Shown here in pieces: positions 34,400 to 50,271 of a DNA stretch of 64,000 nt. The notes under the pieces were generated by a model that saw only the letters and a list, made by a program, of their open reading frames with translations, did not search any database and was not told the DNA's origin. The stretch is from the NCBI GenBank assembly GCA_964035545.1, contig OZ037773.1, forward strand, positions 4,183,751 to 4,247,750. Reading direction: 5' to 3'. Both the position numbers and the translations under genes were made by a program. This stretch comes from Bugula neritina. Lineage: Eukaryota > Animalia > Bryozoa. Numbering within the stretch: the stretch's first letter is position 1; the number at the start of each line of letters is the position of its first letter.

Positions 34400-36318
34400 T
34401 CTAGTGAATAACTATAGGTATAACTATAACTATAAGCACTAGCATGCAACTACTACTAGTACTAGTACTACAGCTAACTTTAACTCTTAAACTTAGTTTA
34501 ACTAGCAATAACATTAAGAGTCACTTAATCTTAATCTTATAGTTATTAACACTAACTCTAGTAAACTCAGTAAAGTACTAGTATTTTCAATTTTCATTAT
34601 TTGCTCAACTCAAGTTCAAGTTGAAGTTCGACGATTATGATTATTACTATTAGTATTAGTCATTCAAATTCAATGTCATTATGATTATGATTACCACTAT
34701 CAGTATCAGCCTCATTATTCCAAAAGGTTGGGTTAAACTTATAAAATGATAAACCATGAATTACACGGCCAGCCTGAGTATCTAGATGTTGAACCAAACG
34801 ACTAGCTAGGGTTTAAATATTATATTTATATGTACTATATAATATCTCTGAAGATTAGCCCGTTAGGCGCTCACACCGGGAACTCATCAATAGCTATGAA
34901 CTCGCTTGGAGCAGCATTGGTTTGGGGTGAATAAGTGCAGTTGTTAAAGGGGTGGAGACAACTATGTCAGCAAATAGCCAAATACTCTACGTAGTCACCC
35001 CTAACCCAGTGCTCCTTATGAAGGCTTTTTTATCACATAATTTCTTAACCTGGGCTCCAGGAAGCTTCTACACAAAATATAAGTTACCGCTTTCTCTATT
35101 TACGTGTTTTAAATAACTAGAACGCTACTAATTTAATGTACCCATTTCATTCACTTGTTACAGCTTCTTTGTCAATTCTTATTGGACCCAAGTGACAGCG
35201 CTAACAATTAAATCTCCAATAAAACTCTCAACCATTCTTGATGAAATTACAACTTTTTTTAGTTTCATGTTTATGTTAAAATAAAATTTGTATATCACTA
35301 CAAGTTGAGTGAAAATATTTGACTGTATGGTTTATAGTATCTTATTTATTTTTAATTTGTTGTTTCATGAAAGTAAAACTAGAAATAAATTATAAATATT
35401 AAATATAAATTAAAATAGTAATACTTAAGAGTTAAGACCAAGTCTCAAACAAAGCCTAATCAGAGTAATCACTACTACTACTAATACTAATGACTAATAG
35501 TAATCAGTAATTAGTAGTTATTAAAAGTAAAAGTCAATCTAAGACTAATAGTAATAGTAATACTTATAGTTATACTCTTACTATAATTAGAAGTATTAGT
35601 AGTTAAGTCATAGTTATACTAATACTCACTAATGACTGTAAGTGTAACTGTAATGAGTAATGACTGATGAATAATGTCTATCATTATGATCTATAACTAT
35701 AAGTATCATTATCAGTATGAGTGTATCAGTTTGAGATTGAGTATCAGTGTGAGTATCACTGTAATCGCCATCGTCAAGGTATAAACACACCTTGACTCAA
35801 GAGACTTAAAGTTGACTTTATGTATGATACTGATGTACTATTGATTAAATCAATGTTAATAATACATAATGAGAATAATAATGTTTTAATTTGAGAGATC
35901 TCATGCAATTACGTTCGAATTGGTAGAAGTCTAGTATTAGTATTACTATTAGTCAATTCCTATAATAATTAATTATAGCATAATGATAAGTATTACTGTA
36001 ACTATTAACCTTAGTACTAGTAGAAATTAGTGCATAATGATAAGTATCTAACAGTTTAAAAATGTATAAAGATGATAATTTGTAACTATTTTCTAGTTGA
36101 TGTTCACACTTAGCTATACTAAATGAGCATAACTATTTACTGTTGAATTTGAATTGTCTTTAGTTGTTGATGAATTATTATAAATTGTTTCGGAACATTG
36201 GATTCATCATCATTTTGTTGAAAGTTTTTATGTATATCACTGTGCCAATTTACTTACATTACAAATTACATTACAAATCATTATAAATCTTGTAGGTTTG
36301 ATGAAACTATGAACAAGC

Positions 36319-39300
36319 ATGAAATATAGTATGCAATGGCAGGTTGTCTTTGTAGTAATCAGCATCAGTTTCTTTCTCAACATCTACATGTTCACATTTC
36401 TTCTCTATCCAGCTACGAGCAGGAACAACCATGGTAAGGCTTGGTATATATTATTTTTTGTCATTTTATGTTGGGACAAATGTAGTAATACGCACGTGTC
36501 ATAAATAATAGCAGGTATGTTTTATACTTAGTTGTTTTGTATGATGTTAGTTTTGCTAGCTGTTATTAAAAGATTGCATGAGATAAAGTTTATTTAAAAT
36601 TAGCTTTGTTTGTTAGTTAATTAGTTAGTTAGTTAGTTGGTGTTAATTGCTGTGTTGGTTTGAGTCATTTTTAACTACCATCCGTTTTAGTTTAGTTGAA
36701 CAAAAATTCTTCTCCGATGTAGATTTAAATATTTTTAATTTAGTTGCAGATGGAAAGTCCTTGGATAAAAATAAACAAAATCAGCTGACTTTAGTTATTC
36801 TTATCATGACAGCTCCTGGTAATCAAGGTATTTGTAGTCATCAGTATATTTGTATGTCACTTGTATATTTATCTACAAATATTATGCTTGATTTGTAATG
36901 GAAATTAGGTGATCAATTCATAATGCCATTCTCATTTTGTCGAATTTTTATATAGCTGAAAAGCAGATTTTAATTGACCACATTATGGACAGAGAAAGAA
37001 TTTAAGTATGCTATAATTAGTTTATAATTAGTTTTGTGGTTGTACAAAATTTGGCTTTTTTTATATCAGTGACTGCCATGAAAAATTCAATTGCATCTGG
37101 CTTAATTAATGGTCAGATTTGTTTAACTTCAGTCAATCTGAATCATTGCATATTTGACAGTTAGAAGAGATGCTATTCGACAAACTTGGGCTTCCAAACT
37201 ACCCTCTGCCCAATCACGGGTTTACTTTGTTTTGGGCTCTCAAAACTTGGACAAGGTGTTGCTCAGAAATGTTTTCTCAGAACAACAAATTAATGCTGAC
37301 ATGATTATTTTAGGCAACATCAAAGTGAGTAGCTTGCTTTTTGAAATCTTACAGAGTTTGTAAAATATTTTTTAAATGATTTTCCGTTGTTTGCTAAGAG
37401 GCATCAAAAGTATTAATTACTGGCATTTGTAAATAATATCCGTAAAATTGAAAAAATTGTAGGCTACTAGTTTATAGTCTATTTCAAGGCTCAATCACCA
37501 GCAACAACTTTTTGAAAGTAGTAAATTATAATTCTTCAATTTTTTTATATCATTTCATTTTTATTGTTAGAAATAAGTTTATTTTCAGGATTCTTATTTC
37601 AAGTTGACTGAGAAGATAGTAGAAGGTATTTCAGTTGTGTTGGAGAGACATAATGTTACATATATCATGAAGTGTGATGATGATACATTCATAGACAGTG
37701 TGAAGCTGTTTGAAAAACTAAACACTTTACCTGCTTCTAAACTGTACTGGGGCTATTTTACAGGTAAAGAGAAAATGTGATTTTGTTTCACATTGATTGC
37801 TAGTTCTAAAAATTAGTATTCTCATATTAAAAATTTAGCTGTCAAAGTATGAAATTGAGTAGTTTTATGGGACTTTGTTCTTTTAATGTGATTAGAATTT
37901 GTGCAAAGGTTTTTGCAACTTTATTAGGTATATACAAGTAAGAAGTTAATTTTTGCACCTGTTACATAAACAAGTATAAATAACTACAGCTAAACATTGT
38001 TTACATATTTCAACCAACTACTGAAACTATGTAATAATTTGTTTTTAGCCTGATATTATTACTATTGTTAATGTCATATTCGTTTACTACTTCGAATTTT
38101 GTTTTAATTCTAGTTTTATTGTGATTAAAAAGCCAGTATAGGAAATTGTGCATTCTTCAATCAGGAGCTGCTCGTGTGAAGACTCAGGGTCAGTGGGCGG
38201 AGCCTAACTATCACCTTTGTGACAGATACTTGCCGTACGCTAGAGGTGGGGGTTATGTGTTGACACAAGATTTAGCTCAGTATATTCTGACTAATAGAAA
38301 CCTTCTGCAGACGTACAACAGTGAAGATGTGACTATAGGTGAGTCATTTTACTACTATAGGTGAGTCATCTTACTGATATAGGTGAGTCATTTTACTACT
38401 ATAGGTGAGTCATTTTACTACTATAGGTGAGTCATTATTCTACTATAGGTGAATCATTATTCTACTATAGGTGAGCCATTTTACTACTATAGGTGAGTCA
38501 TTATACTTCTATTGCTTGGGAGCATCCGTGGTTTAGGGGTTAGAGCTTTGGCCTAATAAACACGAAGTTGTGGTTTCAAACCGCAGTAAGACCATTGGTG
38601 ATGTTAGGAAGAGCATCCAGTCATAATAACTTATGTGCCACATTTGAGTAAGTTCTTATCCTGCTTTTAAAAAACCTTTACCATCAGGGGTGACTACAAG
38701 CTCATGTGAGTTCTTTATTATATTACTATAGCTCAATACAGGAGGTAACTACTTGACTTTGTGATTACTATTATAGGTTAGAATAAAACCGTCTATGGCT
38801 TGGCTCAGGTTTGTATAGTCAGCTAAAATCAGTGGTAGAATATCAGACATTTTTTTCAATCAATACCTTAAGAAAGGAGTTGTTAAGTTAGAATTGTTCT
38901 TTTTCATTATATTGCTTAGTGTATTTCATAGCACTTCTAACTCAAATAGCACTATTTTTTAATCTTTTGTAAGTATTTTCACTTGCCTCAGAAATGTGTA
39001 CCTTTATTTTGGAGTTATGCTTACATGCTAAGTGATTTAGTGACAACATTACTTATATTTTCATTTCATCATAAAATTAGTGAAAAGGTTAAAAATATAA
39101 AATTGAGTGATAAAATATTAAATTAGTAATAGACAGATTGCAATTAAAACATGATATTATATTCCTTACACCTCACTGCATAAATTATATTTCATGTGCC
39201 CACAAGTACGTAATTTACTCATAAACAAGCATATCAGGTCACTTGGTATGTAACATAAGAATATAATAAATTTAAGACAATAAATTCTTTTAAAAAGTAT

Positions 39301-42300
39301 GCATGAAATACATAATAAGCTTGCGTATGTTTAACATAATTTTTCTTTTGTTTTTTAGTTCAAAAATGAAAATTTTAAGTTTTACATCATATAGCATAAA
39401 CTACGTCAGCATTTGTCCACTCATCATTGGTGTGAAATTTTACTGCAAGCTTTCCCACTGTGTCTGAAGCACTTTGAGCATTGAAAACTTATATCTCAGA
39501 GTGCAGTCAATCTGGGGCTGTTGCTTGTCAAGCATTCTGCCACGGTCACCAATGACTAAGATTTTGGTTATATTTGCTATTGTCTTCTGAGCTATTCCCT
39601 CTATCCACCCATCTGTCATACTCTCTGCACAGAGTGCCAGCTTATTCCAACCTTTGCTGTTGAAGTATTCATAGACCTCACCTATGTTTGCGCTGTCGGG
39701 TGTAGCTGTATCCCTTTGACTTTCACACTCATCTATCATTCGTCTCTTAAACTCTCCCGCAAAGGTTTTATATTGACTCATTGCTTTGTGTAATTCCTTC
39801 ACTGCCTCACAGAAGTACTGAATCAGGAAAGAACCCTTCATTTCTACCCAACTACTGTGATTTTCAATACATGCATGTATAATGTACGTATCAGAACCAA
39901 TGGGTATGTATTTGTCAGGGTTGATTTTGTTGTCTAGCATTTTCCTTATTTTGTTTGATAAAGAAAGACGTCTTATATCTTCTGCACTGTCTGCGACAAC
40001 CAGCATTCTGTTACCACGACAAGTCTGGATTAGAAATATTTTGGGTATACTTCTGAACTTTACGCTATCTTGAATTTTCTCCACCACATCCTTTTTAACA
40101 TCACGAAGGTGACAGCTTCCATGATAACTGTGATCAGCTTCCCTTGATTGACTGTTACAACAGGCTGGGCTTATTTCAGATTCTGCCAAAAAAAATTTGC
40201 CGTTCTCCAGGCCATGGGACATTAGAACGAACAATAGGAAGTCGTATCTTTGCTCATCTGGTCTTTCTTCTAGCAGATTGTCAATGAAGACATCAAATTG
40301 GTGTTGTGATTCAGTATCTTTAAGGCATGTAAGGTTTTGTCCAAGAAGAAGGTTCTGGTCACTGTCATCCAAATTGAATGTCTCTTTCAGTATTTGTTCA
40401 TCTTTTTCATACTCTAGTTTGTCATTTCCATACCAACGAAGACTATCATGGATGTAGCGGAAAGAAGAGTTCCTTACTATCACAAACAGTCCTTTGTTTT
40501 TGATTTCATATTCTGATTGAGCTTTTCTAGAGCTCTTGTAGTAACGTACTTGTAGCTGCCCTAAAGCATCATCATTAGTATCTTTTTCTTCAGCAGCAGT
40601 ATTGGCACTGGCTACAAATAGTTAGATTCAGATATACTTGGTTACTGAAATTAGCAAGTGTTTCCAGAATGACTTTATTTTAATTAAATTTTATTGATTA
40701 TAAATGTTTCTTTTTAAATTATCAAATTGAATATTTTTCAGAGTCAATTACAGAGGTTCTAGATTATAAATTTAACAAAAGAAGTTGTGTTCAACTCACG
40801 TCCCAAACTAAAGTTTAACAAAAATTTAAAGAACATAGGCTATCTCAATTTCTCCACTAAATGGAAGTCAACTATAGAGAGTTCATATTCACTGAAAACG
40901 TATTCTTGATACTAATGAAAAGGTTAACTTTATATTTGAAAGAAATAAATAGCTTACTTAATGTTGGATCAGCAGTTGAATGGTGTCCTTGGTCATCCAA
41001 AGAAGTATTATTTGAAGCCATGTTGTTTAGTAGAAGCAGACTACTAGCAGTGCCCACTCTTTACAAAATGCTACTGATGAAAGTGTGTGGTATAGCAATA
41101 ACTAAGTTACATATTGCCTAATAGTACACATATACATCCTGGTACCATCAAGGAAGTGGGTATAAATTGCACAAGTCATGGAACAAATATTTGTCATGAT
41201 GCTAAATCACCAGTGAAACAAAGAGTAATTAATATTTTGAAATGAGATACAGTATTGCAGCAAACGACTTTTGAAGGTATGAGTCATAGAATTATTTCAC
41301 GCGAACTGTGGGGGAGATAACTTTCTGCTATGCAGCCTTAGTTTATAGTAAGCTAATAGCTAGAAGACTGCATTGAGTCGACTGGGGAAAATTATAGCTG
41401 TGCATATTTTTTGGCGTTGCAGATAAAATACATGTTATATATAATTACTGCTGTTTAAATAAAAGCTAAACGACATAATTTTAAAAGTCACGATTCATTA
41501 AGCAATAAATAGATTTCCAAAATGAATCATTATACTTATTTTGAGAGGGAAGAAAAAGAGAATGCGCAAAATAAAGTATATTTTGATTTTTCCCCTAATA
41601 ACATCCTTCTGCATTTTTGGGCTGTTTCTAGTCATTTTGTTTTCTTTTATAATTGCAATGTTGACAGTCGCAGATAATTCCTAAAGCCAAATATTGTTTA
41701 GTAAGACAAAACTTTCACTGTCAAACTGAGGTTGATGCTCAACTATACGAGCCCTTGCATGATGTTGAAAGGAAAGTAGCATAATATACATTTATATAAT
41801 TTGGGATCAATAAACAAAAATATTAAGCAAGTTCTGGCCGTAGCTGTTTTATTTTAAGTTAAAATCAAAGCCTTTCTATGACTTGGCACAGGTTTGTATA
41901 TTCAGCTAAAATCAGTGGTAGAATAATTATATGAAAAAATTTTTTCAAACAACACCTTAAGAATAGAGTTGTGTTAACTTGTTAAGTTAGAATTGTTCTG
42001 TTTATTATATTGCTTAGTGTATTTCATCGCACTTCTAACTCAAATAGCACTATTTTGTTATCTTCTGTAAGTATTTTCACTTGCCTCCAAAATGTGTACC
42101 TTTATTTTGGAGTTATGCTTACATGCTAAGTGATTTATTGACAACATTACTTATATATTCCTTTCATCATAAGATTGGTGAAAGGGTTAAAAATATAAAG
42201 TTGAGGGATAAAATATTAAATTAGTGATAGACAGATTGCAATTAAAACATGATATTATATTCCTTACACTTCACAGCATAAGTTATATTTCATGTGCCCA

Positions 42301-45300
42301 CAAGTACATAATTTACTCATAAACAAGCATATCAAGTCCCTTGGTATGTAACATAAGAATATAATACAATTAAGACAATATATTCTTATAAAAGTCTGCA
42401 TGAAATATATAATAAGCTTTCGTATGTTTAACATAATCTATTTTTCAATTTTTCAATTGGAACATGAAAAATTTAAGTTTTTCATCATATAGCATAAACT
42501 ACGTCAGCATTTGTCCACCCATCATTGGTGTGAAATTTTACTGCAAGCTTTCCCACTGTGTCTGAAGCACTTTGAGCATTGAGAACTTATATCTCAGAGT
42601 GCAGTCAATCTGGGGCTGTTGCTTGTCGAACACTCTGCCACGGTCACCAATGACTAGAATTTTGGTTATATTTGCTATTGTCTTCTGAGCTATTCCCTCT
42701 ATCCACCCATCTGTCATACTCTCTGCACACAGTGCCAGCTTATTCCAACCTTTGCTGTTGAAGTATTCGTAGACCTCACCTATGTTTGCGCTGTCGGGTG
42801 TAGCTGTATCTCTTTGACTTTCACACTCATCTATCATTTGTCTCTTAAACTCTCCCGCAAAGGTTTTATATTGACTCATTGCTGCGTGTAATTCCTTTAC
42901 TGCCTCACAGAAGTGCTGAATCAGGAAAGAACCTTTCATTTCTACCCAACTACTGTGATCTTCAATACATGCATGTATAATGTACGTATCAGAACCAATG
43001 GGTATGTATTTGTCAGGGTTGATTTTGTTGTCTAGCATTTTCCTTATTTTGTTTGATAAAGAAAAACGTCTTATATCTTCATCTTCTACACTGTCTGCGA
43101 CAACCAGCATTCTGTCACCATGGCAAGTCTGGATCAGAAATATTTTGGGTATACTTCTGAACTTTGCGCTATCTTGAATTTTCTCCACCACATCCTTTTT
43201 AACATCACGAAGGTGACAGCTTCCATGATAACTGTGATCAGCTTCCCTTGATTCACTGTTACAACAGGCTGGGCTTTCTTCAGATTCTGCCAAAAAGAAT
43301 TTGCCATTCTCCAGGCCATAGGACATTAGTACAAACAATAGGAAGTCGTATGTTTGCTCATCCGGTCTTTCTTCTAGCAGATTGTCAATGAAGACATCAA
43401 ACTGGTTTTGTAGTTTAGTGTCTTTTTGGCATGTAAGGTTTTGGCCAAGAAGAAGATTCTGGGCGCTGTCATCCAAATTGAATGTCTCTTTTAGTATTTG
43501 TTCATCTTTTTCATTCTCTAGTTTCTCATTTTCATACCACCAAAGACTATCATGGATGTAGTGGAAAGAAGAGTTCCTTACTATCACAAACAGTCCTTTG
43601 TTTTTGATTTCATATTCTGATTGAGCTTTTCTAGAGTTTTTGTAGTAACGTACCAATAACTGCCTTAAAGTATCATCATTAGTACCTTTTTCTTCAGCAG
43701 CAGTATTGGCACTGGCTACAAATAGCTAGATTCAGATATACTTGGTTACTGAAATTTGCAAGTGTTTCCAGAATGACTTAATTTTAATTAAATTTTATTG
43801 ATTATAAATGTTTCTTTTTAAATTATCAAGTTGAACATTTTTCAGAGTCAATTACAGAGATTCTAGATTATAAATTTAACAAAAGAAGTTGTGTTCAACC
43901 CACGTCCCAAACTAAAGTTTAACAAAAGTTTAAAGAACATAAGCTATCTTATTTTCTCCACTAAAAGTAAATGGAAGTCAACTACAGAGAGTTCATACTC
44001 ACTGAAAACGTATTCTTGATACTAATAAAAAAGTTAATTTTATATTTGAAAGAAATAAATATCTTACTTAATGTTGGATCAGCAGTTGAATGATGTCCTT
44101 GGTCATCCAAAGAAGTATTATTTGAAGCCATGTTGTTTAGTATAAGCAGGCTACTAGCAGTGCTCACTCTTCACAAAGTGCTACCAATGAAAGTGTGTGG
44201 TATAGCAATAACAAAGTTACATATTGCCTAATAGTACACATATACATCCTGGTACCATCAAAGAAGTGGGTATAAATTACACAAGTCATGGAGCAAATAT
44301 TTGTCATGAGGCTAAATCACCAGTGAAACAAAGAGTAATTAACATTTTGAAATGAGGTACAGTATTGCAGCAAACAACTTTTGAAGGTATGAGTCATAGA
44401 ATTATTTCACGCGAACTGTGGGGGAGACAACCTTCTGCTATGCAGTTTTAGTTTATAGTACTAGCTAAAGGACTAAATTGAGTCGAATGGGAAAAATTAT
44501 AGCTGTGCATGTTTTTTAGTGCTGAACTTAAAATATTTTATATATAGTTCCTGCTGTTTGTTGAAATAATAGAAGCCAAACAACATAATTTAAAAACAAT
44601 GGTGATTTACTTATAGAAAACAGGAATAAATATATTTACAAAATAAATGTTGATCATTATATCTATTTTGAGATTAAAAACATAAAGAAATATATTTTAA
44701 TTTTCTCCTTATAACATGCTTCTGTACTTTTGGGCTTTTTCTAGTTATTTTGTTTTCCTTTTATAATTACAATATTGACAGTCCCAGATAATACCTAAAG
44801 CCAAATATTGTTTAGTAAGACAAAACTTTCACTGTCAAACTGAGGTTGATGCTCAACTATACAAGCCCTTGCATGATGCTGAAAGGAAAGTAGCGTAATA
44901 TACATTTATATAATTTGGGATCAATACACAAAAATATTAAGCAAGTTCTGACCGTAGCTGTTTTATTTTAAGTTAAAATAAAAGCCTTTCTATGACTTAG
45001 CCTTTGAAGAGCTTTCAGTCATAATAACTTCTGTGCCATATTTGAGTAAGTTCTTATCCCGCTTTTAAAAAACCTTTACCATCAGGGGTAACTACAAGCT
45101 CATGTGAGTTCTTTATTATATTACTATAGCTCAACACAGGAGGTAACTACTTGACTTTATGTGATGACTATTAAATTATAGGTTAGAATAAAACCGTCTA
45201 TGACTTGGCTCAGATTTGTATAGTCAGCTAAAATCAGTGGTAGAATATAAGACATTTTTTTCATCAACACTTTAAGAAAGGAGTTGTGTTAACTTGTTAA

Positions 45301-48300
45301 GTTAGCATTGTTCTGTTCATTATAGCCTATTGCTTAGTGTATTTCTAACTCTAACTTCTAACTCAAATAGCACTATTTTGTAATCTTCTGTAAGTATTTT
45401 CACTTGCCTCCAAAATGTGTACCTTTATTTTGGAGTTATGCTTACATGCTAAGTGATGTAGTGACAACATTACTTATATTTTCGTTTCATCATAAGATTG
45501 GCGAAAGGGTTAAGCATATAAAATTGAGGGATAAAATATTAAATTAGTGATAGACAGATTGCAATTAAAACATGATATTATATTCCTTACACCTCACTGC
45601 ATACATTATATTCCATGTGCCCACAAGTACATAATTTAGTCATAAACAAGCATATCAAGTCCCTTGGTATGTAAAATAAGAGTACAATACAATTAAGACA
45701 ATATATTATTATAAAAAGTATGCATGAAATATATAATAAGCTTTCGTATGTTTAACATAATCTATTTTTCAATTTTTCAATTTTTCAATTGGAACATGAA
45801 AAATTTAAGTTTTTCATCATATAGCATAAACTACGTCAGCATTTGTCCACCCATCATTGGTGTGAAATTTTACTGCAAGCTTTCCCACTGTGTCTGAAGC
45901 ACTTTGAGCATTGAGAACTTATATCTCAGAGTGCAGTCAATCTGGGGCTGTTGCTTGTCGAACACTCTGCCACGGTCACCAATGACTAGAATTTTGGTTA
46001 TATTTGCTATTGTCTTCTGAGCTATTCCCTCTATCCACCCATCTGTCATACTCTCTGCACAGAGTGCCAGCTTATTCCAACCTTTGCTGTTGAAGTATTC
46101 GTAGACCTCACCTATGTTTGCGCTGTCAGGTGTAGCTGTATCCCTTTGACTTTCACACTCATCTGTCATTCGTCTCTTAAACTCTCCCACAAAGGTTTTA
46201 TATTGACTCATTGCTGCGTGTAATTCCTTCACTGCCTCACAGAAGCGCTGAATCAGGAAAGAACCCTTTTTTTCTACCCAACTACTGTGATTTTCAATAC
46301 ATGCATGTATAATGTACGTATCAGAACCAATGGGTATGTATTTGTCAGGGTTGATTTTGTTGTCTAGCAATTTTCTTATTTTGTTTGATAAAGAAAACCG
46401 TCTTATATCTTCTGCACTGCTTGTGACAAACCGCATTCTGTCACCATGGCAAGTCTGGATTAGAAATATTTTGGGTATACTTCTGAACTTTGCGCTATCT
46501 TGAATTTTCTCCACTACATCCTTTTTAACATCACGAAGGTGACAGCTTCCATGATAACTGTGATCAGCTTTCCTTGATTCACTGTTACAACAGGCTGGGC
46601 TTTCTTCAGATTCTGCCAAAAAGAATTTGCCATTCTCCAGGCTATAGGACATTAGTACAAACAATAGGAAATCGTATGTTTGCTCATCTGGTCTTTCTTC
46701 TAGCAGATTATCAATGAAGACATCAAACTGGTTTTGTGGTTCAGTGTCTTTAAGGCATGTAAGGTTTTGTCCAAGAAGAAGATTCTGGTCACTGTCATCC
46801 AAATTGAATGTCTCTTTTAGTATTTGTTCATCTTCTTCAGTCTCTAGTTTCTCATTTCCATACCACCAAAGACTATCATGGACATAGCGGAAAGAGGAGT
46901 TCCTTACTATCACAAACAGTCCTTTGTTTTTGATTTCATATTCTGATTGAGCTTTTCTAGAGTTTTTGTAGTAACGTACCAATAACTGCCTTAAAGTATC
47001 ATCATTAGTACCTTTTTCTTCAGCAGCAGTATTGGCACTGGCTACAAATAGCAAGATTCAGATATACTTGGTTACTGAAATTAGCAAGTGTTTCCAGAAT
47101 GACTTTATTTTAATTAAATTTTATTGATTATAAATGTTTCTTTTTAAATTATCAAGTTGAATATTTTTCAGAGTCAATTAGAGAGATTCTAGATTATAAA
47201 TTTAACTAAAGAAGTTGTGTTCAACCCACGTCCCAAACCAAAGTTTAACAAAAATTTAAAGAACATAGGCTATGTCAATCTCTCCACTACTGCTCTTAAA
47301 TGGAAGTCAACTGCAGAGAGTTCATATTCACCAAAAACGTATTCTTGATATTAATGAAAAAGTTAATTTTATATTTGAAAGAAATAAATATCTTACTTAA
47401 TGTTGGATCAGCAGTTGAATGCTGTCCTTGGTCATCCAAAGAAGTATTATTTGAAGCCATGTTGTTTAGTAGAAGCAGACTACTAGCAGTGCTCACTCTT
47501 TACAAAATGCTACCAATGAAAGTGTGTGGTATAGCAAAAGCTAAGTTACATATTGCCTAATAGTACACATATACATCCTGGTACCATCAAGGAAGTGGGT
47601 ATAGATTGCACAAGTCATGGAGCAAATATTTGTCATGAGGCTAAATCACCAGTGAAACAAAGAGTAATTAACATTTTGAAATGAGATACAGCACTGCAGC
47701 AAATAACTTTTGAAGGTATGAGTCATAGAATTATTTCACGCGAACTGTGGGGGAGATAACTTACTGCTATGCAGTTTTAGTTTATATTAAGCTAATAGCT
47801 AGAAGACTACATTGAGTCGACTGGGGAAAAGTATAGCTGTGCATATTTTTTGGCGTTGCAGATAAAATACATGTTATATATAATTACTGCTGTTCAAATA
47901 AAAGCTAAACGACATAATTTAAAAAGTTACGTTTCCATAAAAAATAAATAGATTTCCAAAATGAATCATTATACTTATTTAGAGAGTAAAGAAAAAAAGA
48001 ATGCGCAAAATAAAGTATATTTTTATTTTTCCCCTAATAACATGCTTCTGTATTTTTGGGCTGTTTCTAGTTATTTTGTTTTCCTTTTATAATTGCAATG
48101 TTGACAGCAGTCGCAGATAATTCCTAAAGCCAAATATTGTTTAGTAAGACAAAACTTTCACTGTCAAACTGAGGTTGATGCTCAACTATCCAAGCCCTTG
48201 CATGATTTTGAAAGGAAAGTAGCATAATATACATTTATATAATTTGGGATCAATACACAAAAATATTAAGCAAGTTCTGACCGTAGCTGTTTTATTTTAA

Positions 48301-49203
48301 AAGTCAAATTTTGATGATGTAAATATAAGCTGTTCTAAAATCAAGTTACATAAAATATATTTGGTAATTAATGATTTTTTCAAGTTGTTTACTGTTTACG
48401 CTCTGTTTCTCAATTCTGTTTGACACCATATGTAAACCTAAAAATTGTTGCATATCAGCTAGTGACATTCAACAATTGTGAATTGACTCTTCAATGTTCA
48501 GTGGGAATGGTGGAAGGATATCATGTTTGAGCATTTCTGCTTTTCCTTCGTTGTGCAGAATATTTCAAGCTCTTCATAACATCATGTGGATTAGTACCAA
48601 TAAGTTTCAATCTGCCCTATCAAACAAACAGGTGGCAGAAACTTTTAACTAAATTGATTGTCAATGTAATATATTTCACTGGTATTGTTATAATATCAAT
48701 CAGAGCTGTTCAATAATTTAAATTAGTGGCTGTGAATCACTCATCCTTGTTATTGTCATCATCTGTGTGCAATAAACATTAAGTTCCTGCTAATCAGCTC
48801 ATATTTATATTTCACAATATGTATGTTTCAATCATGGTTATTAGTACTTCTACTTAATAAGCATGATCCCTTGTTATTTTCTGGAAATTAACCATCTCTC
48901 TATGCTACATGCCGCTAACACTAAATTATTAGTAAAGTTACTTAATTGATTTTTACAGGAGTATGGCTAGCACCTCTCGATATAACTCGACTTCATGACG
49001 TTGGCTTTGATACTGAGGCTAAATCTAGAGGATGTTTAAATCACCATATTGTCAGTCATAAGCAGACGGTGAATGACATGACGTCAAAGCATGAGTCACT
49101 AGAGAGCACTGGAAGGTTGTGTGCTCATGAAGTCGTATATAAGAAAGAGTATATATACAATTGGGACGTTCCACCCAGTCAATGCTGTACTGTTAAGACA
49201 TAG
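36319..49203 (+). CDS. B3GALT6: Beta-1,3-galactosyltransferase 6 (GT31; GAG linker galactosyltransferase II)
   Basis: Exons 36319-36433, 36744(or 36750)-36827, 37161-37324, 37589-37763, 38165-38338, 48959-49203. N-terminal TM; RRDAIRQTW, KLTEK, KCDDDTF, LYWGYF, LCDRYLPYARGGGYVL, SEDVTIGVWLAP, FDTEAKSRGC, YNWDVPPSQCC. Confidence 0.92.
38331..38502 (+). repeat. 22-bp tandem repeat containing the B3GALT6 exon-5 donor (8 copies)
   Basis: TATAG|GTGA at 38339, 38361, 38383, 38405, 38427, 38449, 38471 and 38493. Confidence 0.92.
38518..38712 (+). mobile_element. tRNA-derived SINE
   Basis: A-box-like TGGTTTAGGGG, B-box-like GGTTTCAAACC; core ggtgatgttaggaagagcatccagtcata is shared with the copy at 58376; its 3' half is duplicated at ~45008-45112. 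Confidence 0.75.
39440..41021 (-). CDS. Caspase-like protein copy 1 (C14 fold; His-Cys dyad intact), 411 aa
   Basis: Exon 1 40958-41021 (MASNNTSLDD...PTL) splices in phase 1 to exon 2 39440-40611. Motifs KNKGLFVIVRN, FLLFVLMSHG, PKIFLIQTCRG, IPIGSD, GSFLIQYFCE, KQQPQIDCTLRYKF. Confidence 0.9.
42538..44131 (-). CDS. Caspase-like protein copy 2, predicted inactive (SHG->SYG, QTCRG->QTCHG)
   Basis: Exons 44068-44131 and 42538-43715; frame open, splice sites intact. Confidence 0.87.
45870..47460 (-). CDS. Caspase-like protein copy 3, predicted inactive (SHG->SYS, QTCRG->QTCHG)
   Basis: Exons 47397-47460 and 45870-47041; frame open, splice sites intact. Confidence 0.87.
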
Positions 49204-50271
49204 CTTTCTATATTATATTTATATATATGACTTCTATATTATATTTATACATATAATTTTTTTTATTTTTGTACGCCACTATATACCTAATGAAGTCTTA
49301 TATGCTTTTAATAATCAAACATTTGAATAGAAAGTATACTGTATTTTCTGTATAGAACCTGACATTCCCCATTAGTTCAAAGGGTAGGTTCAGTAAATTG
49401 GAAAAAGTTTTCTCCTAGATAAGAAATATTGTTCAAAGAAGAGCTTTATATACATTTTAGGAGTTTAAGCTTATACACTTAAAATTAGTGATGACAATTG
49501 AAGAACTTACACTATTGCCGATAGTCCACATTACTGAACTTAAATGTAGGTTCAATTGGCTTCTAAAGTGGTCCATTAGATGTTAATTTTATGTAAAGAT
49601 ACTTCAAAGACTTTGTATCATCATACTAATGAGTGTCATCTGAAATTACCATTTTCTACAAGACTACTAGAATTTTCTTGTGGAAACATCACTATAAACC
49701 TGACCTCCCTTGGGGTTTGTGCAATACCTAGTCCGTATGAGTATTCTAATGTTACAGCTGAATCCAGCCTCAATGCCAGTCTGCATTATTAATGCTTCCT
49801 GCGTTGGTTAATATTTTAATAGCAAATCTCAAGAGAAGCATATTTAACATCTCAGGTTGCACCAATCGGGAATTCTCTGTTCATGTATAAGTAGAACAAC
49901 AATTGTCATATCGATTTATTTTATTAAAGATGCATGATGCAGAATAATATAATCAGTAGGCATAGTTCATAATATAATAATATAATAATATAGTTCATAC
50001 TATATCTTATTTATGAACTTGAAGAATTTATTAAACATGTGGCTGTTGTCTTGATGAGGAATATAAATGGCATTCGGTGCTCATATGTTTTATTTAAATA
50101 AAAAACAGACTGCTTTGTTTTTGTTCGAATAAAAATCATAAATAATATATTTTCAAAAGTTATTTACTTTTTTCTCGACGAAAGAGCACATGTGTACTTA
50201 GAACAAAAAACAAAACATTGACTGATATTTTATAAGACAAAAATATTACTTTCAGGTTGCACCTAGTCATT

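Follow-up and report, generated by a model that had tools for sequence, protein, structure and literature searches.

When a protease gene has been duplicated in tandem and some of the copies have lost a catalytic residue, are the altered copies kept as regulators of the live one, or are they duplicates on their way to becoming pseudogenes? This question is raised by a locus in the bryozoan Bugula neritina, which lies in a stretch of 64,000 nucleotides (assembly GCA_964035545.1, contig OZ037773.1, positions 4,183,751 to 4,247,750 of the forward strand; hereafter "the window") and holds three caspase-like genes in a row. Copy 1 carries both residues of the caspase catalytic dyad, His and Cys; copies 2 and 3 have Tyr in place of the His and keep the Cys. 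A first reading of the DNA, made from the letters alone (the original prediction), had taken the locus for a lineage-specific module in which two near-identical dead paralogues tune an active protease. Our analysis puts at about an even chance that copies 2 and 3 are retained pseudo-proteases, catalytically dead or crippled, which probably act by pairing with copy 1.

Anatomy of the tandem array

Two-exon gene models were built with the public proteins P0001 and P0002 as a guide, and copy 1 has the same exon structure as these two NCBI proteins. The three genes lie on the minus strand within three direct repeat units of 3.1-3.3 kb, at about 38600-48340 of the window. The positions of the two catalytic motifs (SHG, SYG or SYS around the first dyad residue, QTCRG or QTCHG around the second) were confirmed by translation. 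The features, in window coordinates, are as follows (nt, nucleotides):

38600..48340, no strand: tandem array, with units at about 38600-41860, 41860-44975 and 44976-48340
40958..41021, minus strand: copy 1 (W1), exon 1; ATG plus 21 codons plus 1 nt; donor GTAAGC; intron of 346 nt
39440..40611, minus strand: copy 1, exon 2 with stop codon; caspase-like domain; SHG at 40211-40219, QTCRG at 40013-40027
40103..40162, minus strand: Cys/His-rich insert of copy 1, located between the catalytic His and Cys and shared by all three copies
44068..44131, minus strand: copy 2 (W2), exon 1; donor GTAAGA; intron of 352 nt
42538..43715, minus strand: copy 2, exon 2; SYG at 43315-43323, QTCHG at 43117-43131
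near 43081-43086, minus strand: in-frame 6-nt insertion (Glu-Asp) in copy 2
47397..47460, minus strand: copy 3 (W3), exon 1; donor GTAAGA; intron of 355 nt
45870..47041, minus strand: copy 3, exon 2; SYS at 46641-46649, QTCHG at 46443-46457

Each copy begins with an ATG start codon and has zero internal stops, and its intron of 346-355 nt runs from a GTAAG donor to a TTTGTAG acceptor; the encoded proteins are 411 (copy 1), 413 (copy 2) and 411 (copy 3) amino acids long. In protein sequence, the identity of copies 2 and 3 with copy 1 is 91-92%. The SHG codons of copy 1 read TCC CAT GGC, and copy 3 has an additional Gly to Ser replacement (G155S), a third change in the same motif. The anatomy given in the original prediction, including the motifs, the full open reading frames (ORFs), the splice sites and the in-frame 6-nt indel, proved right in every detail. 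The repeat units start about 3.10 and 3.33 kb apart and consist of blocks that are 93-99% identical, each unit comprising the gene with its intron together with about 0.8 kb of upstream and 0.7 kb of downstream DNA.

A divergent caspase-fold family in bryozoans

The long ORF of each unit matches the Pfam family PF00656 (Peptidase_C14) with E-values of 3e-10 to 4e-9 and 37-41 bits, against a gathering cut-off of 21.4 bits. An AlphaFold2 (AF2) model built with the family alignment reached a pLDDT of 77.5 and a pTM of 0.81, and the top 50 matches to this model in Foldseek were all caspase-7, -3 or -8 structures (probability 1.0, TM 0.67-0.77 on the target, with 0.70-0.77 for the best of them); the complex of caspase-8 with c-FLIP(L), 3h11, is among these fold matches. 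A profile of the family aligned to caspase-3 with an E-value of 9e-17, setting LMSHG on LLSHG and IQTCRG on IQACRG, and we therefore regard SHG and QTCRG as the motifs of the catalytic dyad. That the His of SHG is a caspase dyad residue had been claimed before, and the alignments to caspase-3 and -7 bear this out for both His and Cys.

A word-index protein search among 5.8 billion clusters returned, as the closest proteins, only three hypothetical proteins of Bugula neritina (GCA_010799875.2), which share 91%, 87% and 47% identity with copy 1; in that collection, the Tyr copies have no protein derived from a transcript. A HMMER scan of 1.84 billion representatives yielded 48 relatives, and those with a species name come from Bugula and from the cheilostome bryozoan Watersipora subatra, the others being from metagenome or run assemblies. 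By profile and fold this is a divergent caspase-fold (peptidase C14) family, all of whose named members are bryozoan. Apart from the array, this genome has just two members of the family, which form a tandem pair on the same contig at a distance of about 4.8 Mb (G000:C9:9044204-9045301 and 9050283-9051389; L004 and L005). The pair is 49% identical, has intact SHG and VQTCRG motifs and is orthologous to P0003.

The family has several features of its own. The AF2 model places a long helical insertion within the small-subunit part, and between the catalytic His and Cys lies the Cys/His-rich insert, about 20 residues long with a nearly invariant C-C..H..C..R pattern in live and dead clades alike. 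This insert is absent from classical caspases and looks like a possible structural metal site. In caspases, the specificity for Asp is conferred by two arginines of the S1 pocket, R64 and R207 in caspase-3 and R179 and R341 in caspase-1. Both are absent throughout the family, as the position of caspase-3 R64 holds Lys (DKLEY) and that of R207 (SWR) holds Val (SWV); the Lys varies across the family, and the Gln of QxCRG is kept. Therefore, even copy 1 is probably not Asp-specific: it is a caspase-fold protein with an intact dyad and a specificity probably directed at something other than Asp. With no S1 arginines, the aligned sequences fall outside the Asp-specific caspases in the strict sense (MEROPS C14A), and copy 1, the active copy of the original prediction, is not a typical active caspase. 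The searched literature yielded no paper that deals with this family or with caspases of bryozoans, and a survey of apoptosis in lophotrochozoans (PMC11463336) does not mention bryozoans.

Origin of the tyrosine copies

Contigs of the public B. neritina assembly GCA_010799875.2 are syntenic with the window, with a DNA identity of only 78-90%, and the window therefore stems from another lineage within the B. neritina complex or from a species very close to it. The public assembly holds the locus on two haplotigs (L006, VXIV02000658.1, and L007, VXIV02002620.1), one with a single copy of the gene and the other with two, whose flanks are 92-94% identical to each other. All three copies on these syntenic contigs have SHG and QTCRG, and the distant paralogues L004 and L005 in this genome also keep motifs of this type. 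Because the copies of the public assembly and the distant paralogues all retain the His, the Tyr is derived in the lineage studied here. The proposal that the His loss is lineage-specific thus agrees with its absence from all three copies of the related assembly. On the two-copy haplotig, about 3.5 kb of unrelated DNA separates the copies.

Parsimony places two changes, H154Y (CAT to TAT) and R220H (CGT to CAT, a CpG transition), on the stem of copies 2 and 3, where they make up two of the four nonsynonymous changes. We also considered recent gene conversion as the source of the shared Tyr. This was ruled out, as copies 2 and 3 differ from each other within 25 nt on either side of both changed codons, and the shared Tyr state was therefore inherited rather than recently converted.

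A separate observation concerns codons 37-48 at the 5' end of exon 2 (in copy 1, for example, 40480-40520), which occur as two types, ..GQLQ..KSS and ..RQLL..KNS, across both Bugula lineages. Over these codons copy 1 is closer to the haplotig with two copies, and copies 2 and 3 are more like the one with a single copy. This pattern hints at two or more paralogue types that would be older than the lineage split and later partly homogenised.

Selection on copies 2 and 3

Pairwise codon models gave omega values of 0.30-0.53 for all pairs of copies. As a neutral yardstick we used the flanking and intronic DNA of the same units, leaving aside one divergent block upstream of copy 2 (described below). 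Between copies 2 and 3, nonsynonymous divergence is 2.6%, against 5.2% in the non-coding DNA (Fisher p=0.0027), and synonymous divergence is 7.0%, which does not differ from that of the non-coding DNA. Nonsynonymous sites are thus half as diverged as their non-coding surroundings. The coding sequences of the two copies differ by one in-frame indel and zero frameshifts; the non-coding DNA of the same two units (1.5 kb of flank) has 12 indels, and 8 of these are of a length that would break a reading frame.

By branch, nonsynonymous and synonymous changes numbered 7:7 on the copy 1 tip, 8:8 (plus the indel) on the copy 2 tip, 12:8 on the copy 3 tip and 4:4 on the stem of copies 2 and 3, and the ratio at the tips of the Tyr copies is no different from that of copy 1 (p=0.76). 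Taken together, these results, which come from two sequences, are suggestive of purifying selection that continues, in relaxed form, to act on copies 2 and 3, and they moderately favour it over decay. Non-neutral evolution of the copies had been made one test of the original prediction. The reduced nonsynonymous divergence supports it, and the codon test between copies 2 and 3 rejects neutrality only marginally (omega 0.51; likelihood-ratio test against 1, p=0.052).

Transcription and pairing

No RNA data set of this lineage turned up in a search of sequencing runs, and the runs retrieved were compared with copies 2 and 3 at 98% or more. Three of them (X1, X2 and X5) behave as DNA, with introns and intergenic DNA covered. 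A fourth, X8, is labelled as RNA-seq and stems from a symbiont-metagenome study of 2016; it contains a contig of high depth with the exact predicted joint 47041/47397, which reads CT..AC on the plus strand and hence GT..AG on the strand of the gene. On either side of this joint, copies 1-3 and the copy of the related lineage have the same sequence; the contig is not diagnostic of any one copy and probably comes from a related lineage. Other, short pieces of X8 match the His-type copies of that lineage equally well or better. A Bugula sample thus shows transcription of the caspase-like family with the modelled splicing, a result that is not specific to the Tyr copies.

A complex prediction for copy 1 with copy 2 gave a score of 0.58, against 0.00 for the best of three controls, which is weak support for a heterodimer. 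In calibration, 51 of 78 solved complexes reached this mark, as did 2 of 108 mismatched pairs, and scores of 0.60 or under took in only 5 of the 78 solved complexes but all 4 of the mismatches that passed. The runs agreed in at least 70% of contacts, with a partner pLDDT of at least 61. Heterodimers of dead and active copies had been predicted earlier; the modelled complex lends this weak support. The C-terminal strand region is identical in all three copies, and the intersubunit linker, at residues 199-225 of exon 2, varies between copies and is disordered in the AF2 prediction.

The scenario that we favour begins with a young tandem array, variable in copy number, of this divergent bryozoan family. 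In the present lineage, one member of the array exchanged its catalytic His for Tyr and the Arg beside its catalytic Cys for His, and was then duplicated to give copies 2 and 3. By established caspase enzymology, these changes would be expected to abolish or cripple activity in both. Most likely, the two copies would still be protein-coding and would experience the same relaxed form of purifying selection as their His-bearing counterparts, and they would pair with copy 1 or with each other, modulating the activity of copy 1 by inhibition or activation. We consider pairing the most likely role because caspase-fold proteins work as dimers and the C-terminal strand region is shared by all copies. 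For copies 2 and 3 themselves, we infer expression, dimerisation and a regulatory effect.

Weighing the explanations

Several points count against the view that copies 2 and 3 are retained as pairing partners. Copy number ranges from one to three among haplotypes and lineages, and the extra copies may be dispensable. The codon test between copies 2 and 3 is marginal, as given above, and the contrast in indels is overstated, since most of the indels in the flanks fall in the one AT-rich, divergent block upstream of copy 2; we have down-weighted it for this reason. In X8, the sole source of spliced RNA, no copy-specific transcript evidence for copies 2 and 3 was found. The score of the predicted complex may reflect a memory of solved caspase dimers. 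Lastly, copy 1 itself has no S1 arginines, and protease activity is at most putative in any of the copies.

Some of these points also count for the main rival explanation, which we regard as quite possible. In this view, copies 2 and 3 would be young, redundant duplicates whose function went with the change of His to Tyr; they would be drifting towards pseudogenes and be intact only through their youth. Polymorphic copy number, an omega not significantly below 1 and expression that is not proven by the runs compared would all fit such drift. There are only 43 substitutions between the two copies, and by a rough estimate the chance of finding no stop among them is about 0.15. Moreover, H154Y, R220H and G155S fall in the two catalytic motifs, as would be expected once the constraint on an active site had gone. 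What speaks for retention is that nonsynonymous sites have diverged half as much as the flanking non-coding DNA, and synonymous sites match it; that the reading frames have zero frameshifts, with a single in-frame indel set against eight frame-breaking ones in the flanks; that splice sites and start codons are intact in both copies; and that nonsynonymous and synonymous changes stand in the same ratio as they do in the His-bearing copy.

It is improbable, in our view, that copies 2 and 3 still work as enzymes through a changed mechanism or with a changed specificity, with the new His of QTCHG or another residue serving as the general base. H154Y and R220H did arise on the same short branch, the new His adjoins the retained nucleophile Cys, and the lack of S1 arginines already makes the family atypical. 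However, in caspase structures the residue after the catalytic Cys faces the dimer interface, away from the active site. The His of SHG is kept in every presumed active member of the family, and proteases of clan CD generally need it. Least likely of all, and very improbable, is that the His-less codons or the three-copy array are an artefact of assembly or sequencing, such as collapsed or duplicated haplotypes: the DNA-like run of the same lineage that agrees with the assembly, X1, may be the assembly's own source (its coverage at the two Tyr codons was not itemised) and Logan contigs drop rare variants, but the copies differ by 3.5-9% over whole units including flanks within a multi-megabase contig, X1 contigs match the unit-specific sequence of copies 2 and 3 at 98-100% and report no alternative letters at either Tyr codon, and two independent codons in two motifs are altered in both copies.

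Returning to copies 2 and 3 as retained pseudo-proteases, a bolder form of this reading would see in them a pseudo-protease just after its birth, in which a live member of this family, taken as specific to bryozoans and not directed at Asp, lost its His in one cryptic lineage of the B. neritina complex, and the dead copy was kept by selection, duplicated again and came to modulate its 92%-identical live neighbour. We consider this rather unlikely as a whole. If true, it would be a miniature repeat of the ancient origin of a His/Cys-less clade within the same family (see below), and the sister lineage with His copies only would provide a natural before-and-after pair for the passage from dead enzyme to regulator.

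Surroundings and mosaic structure of the array

The window has the base composition of AT-rich eukaryotic DNA, with a GC content of about 0.29-0.39. In the public syntenic annotation, the region corresponding to about 36000-49300 holds a Galactosyl_T (PF01762) gene on the plus strand, with the caspase-like gene antisense inside it. By synteny, the entire array is placed within an intron of the Galactosyl_T gene here as well.

In the DNA upstream of copy 2 (44435-44811), unit 2 has a block that is 15-18% diverged from units 1 and 3, and the same block differs by only 4-7% between units 1 and 3. Judged by this block, the repeat units are mosaics, and the promoter region of copy 2 may be distinct from those of the other copies. 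The last 180 nt or so of the coding sequence, in turn, are identical in copies 2 and 3 (42538-42720 and 45870-46052), with the remainder differing by 3.5%; this stretch is probably a short gene-conversion tract.

Comparison with known systems

Most members of the bryozoan family retain both His and Cys. One old clade (support 100/99, eight representatives) has lost both, with motifs such as LMSAG and IQTVSG; it comprises P0014, P0020, P0021, P0025, P0027, P0029, P0031 and P0048, two of which are annotated Watersipora subatra proteins. This clade keeps the other motifs of the family, including the Cys/His-rich insert, and persists in other bryozoans over long branches. Dead members of the family can therefore be retained for a long time. 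With P0029 as the query, no member of the clade was found in the present genome, where only the five known family members were matched. Copies 2 and 3 share with this clade the family itself, its fold-defining motifs and the insert; the loss in the clade, however, was independent, ancient and of both residues, whereas that of copies 2 and 3 is recent and of the His only.

Nearly all known dead protease paralogues with a regulatory role are old, and the first steps of their origin are invisible. At this locus, dead and live copies stand side by side with a protein difference of about 8%, and a sister lineage has live copies only. If copies 2 and 3 are expressed and selected, they would offer a tractable case of the birth of a pseudoenzyme at a very early stage; if they are merely decaying duplicates, the locus is ordinary. 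The family, which is undescribed in the searched literature and combines a caspase fold without S1 arginines, a conserved Cys/His-rich insert, a long helical insertion and an old dead clade, would give a wider view of the caspase-like proteases that lophotrochozoans possess.

In copies 2 and 3 a catalytic residue is lost from an otherwise full caspase domain, as in pseudo-caspase regulators of the c-FLIP or CASPS18 type. The vertebrate protein c-FLIP(L) is a caspase-fold paralogue, duplicated near active genes and without catalytic residues, that heterodimerises with caspase-8 or caspase-10. The likeness to the bryozoan copies lies in the origin by duplication near a live gene and in the loss of a catalytic residue. 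In contrast, c-FLIP has neither Cys nor His and carries tandem death effector domain (DED) prodomains, whereas copies 2 and 3 have lost the His only, keep the Cys and have no recognisable prodomain; they are also about 92% identical to the live copy, and their pairing is only predicted. In C. elegans, CSP-3 and CSP-2 are inactive caspase homologues that restrain an active caspase. CSP-3 resembles a small subunit and is truncated; copies 2 and 3, in contrast, are full length.

Another lineage-specific set of dead and live paralogues is found in Aedes aegypti, where the incompetent caspase CASPS18, a decoy, is co-expressed with its active paralogue CASPS19 and is considered its enhancer (PMC4840389). 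These are effector caspases of the Decay type with experimental support, whereas the bryozoan genes have no S1 arginines and are known from their sequences. The replacement of the catalytic His by Tyr in a C14-fold protein also has a parallel in the cyanobacterial pseudo-orthocaspases, conserved proteins in which Tyr and Ser replace the His/Cys dyad (PMC6426788). Those, however, are prokaryotic and ancient, have lost the Cys as well and have no tandem, near-identical active copy. Dead paralogues that regulate proteases are thus already known, and what sets copies 2 and 3 apart is that they are very young, have lost the His only and belong to a family without S1 arginines.

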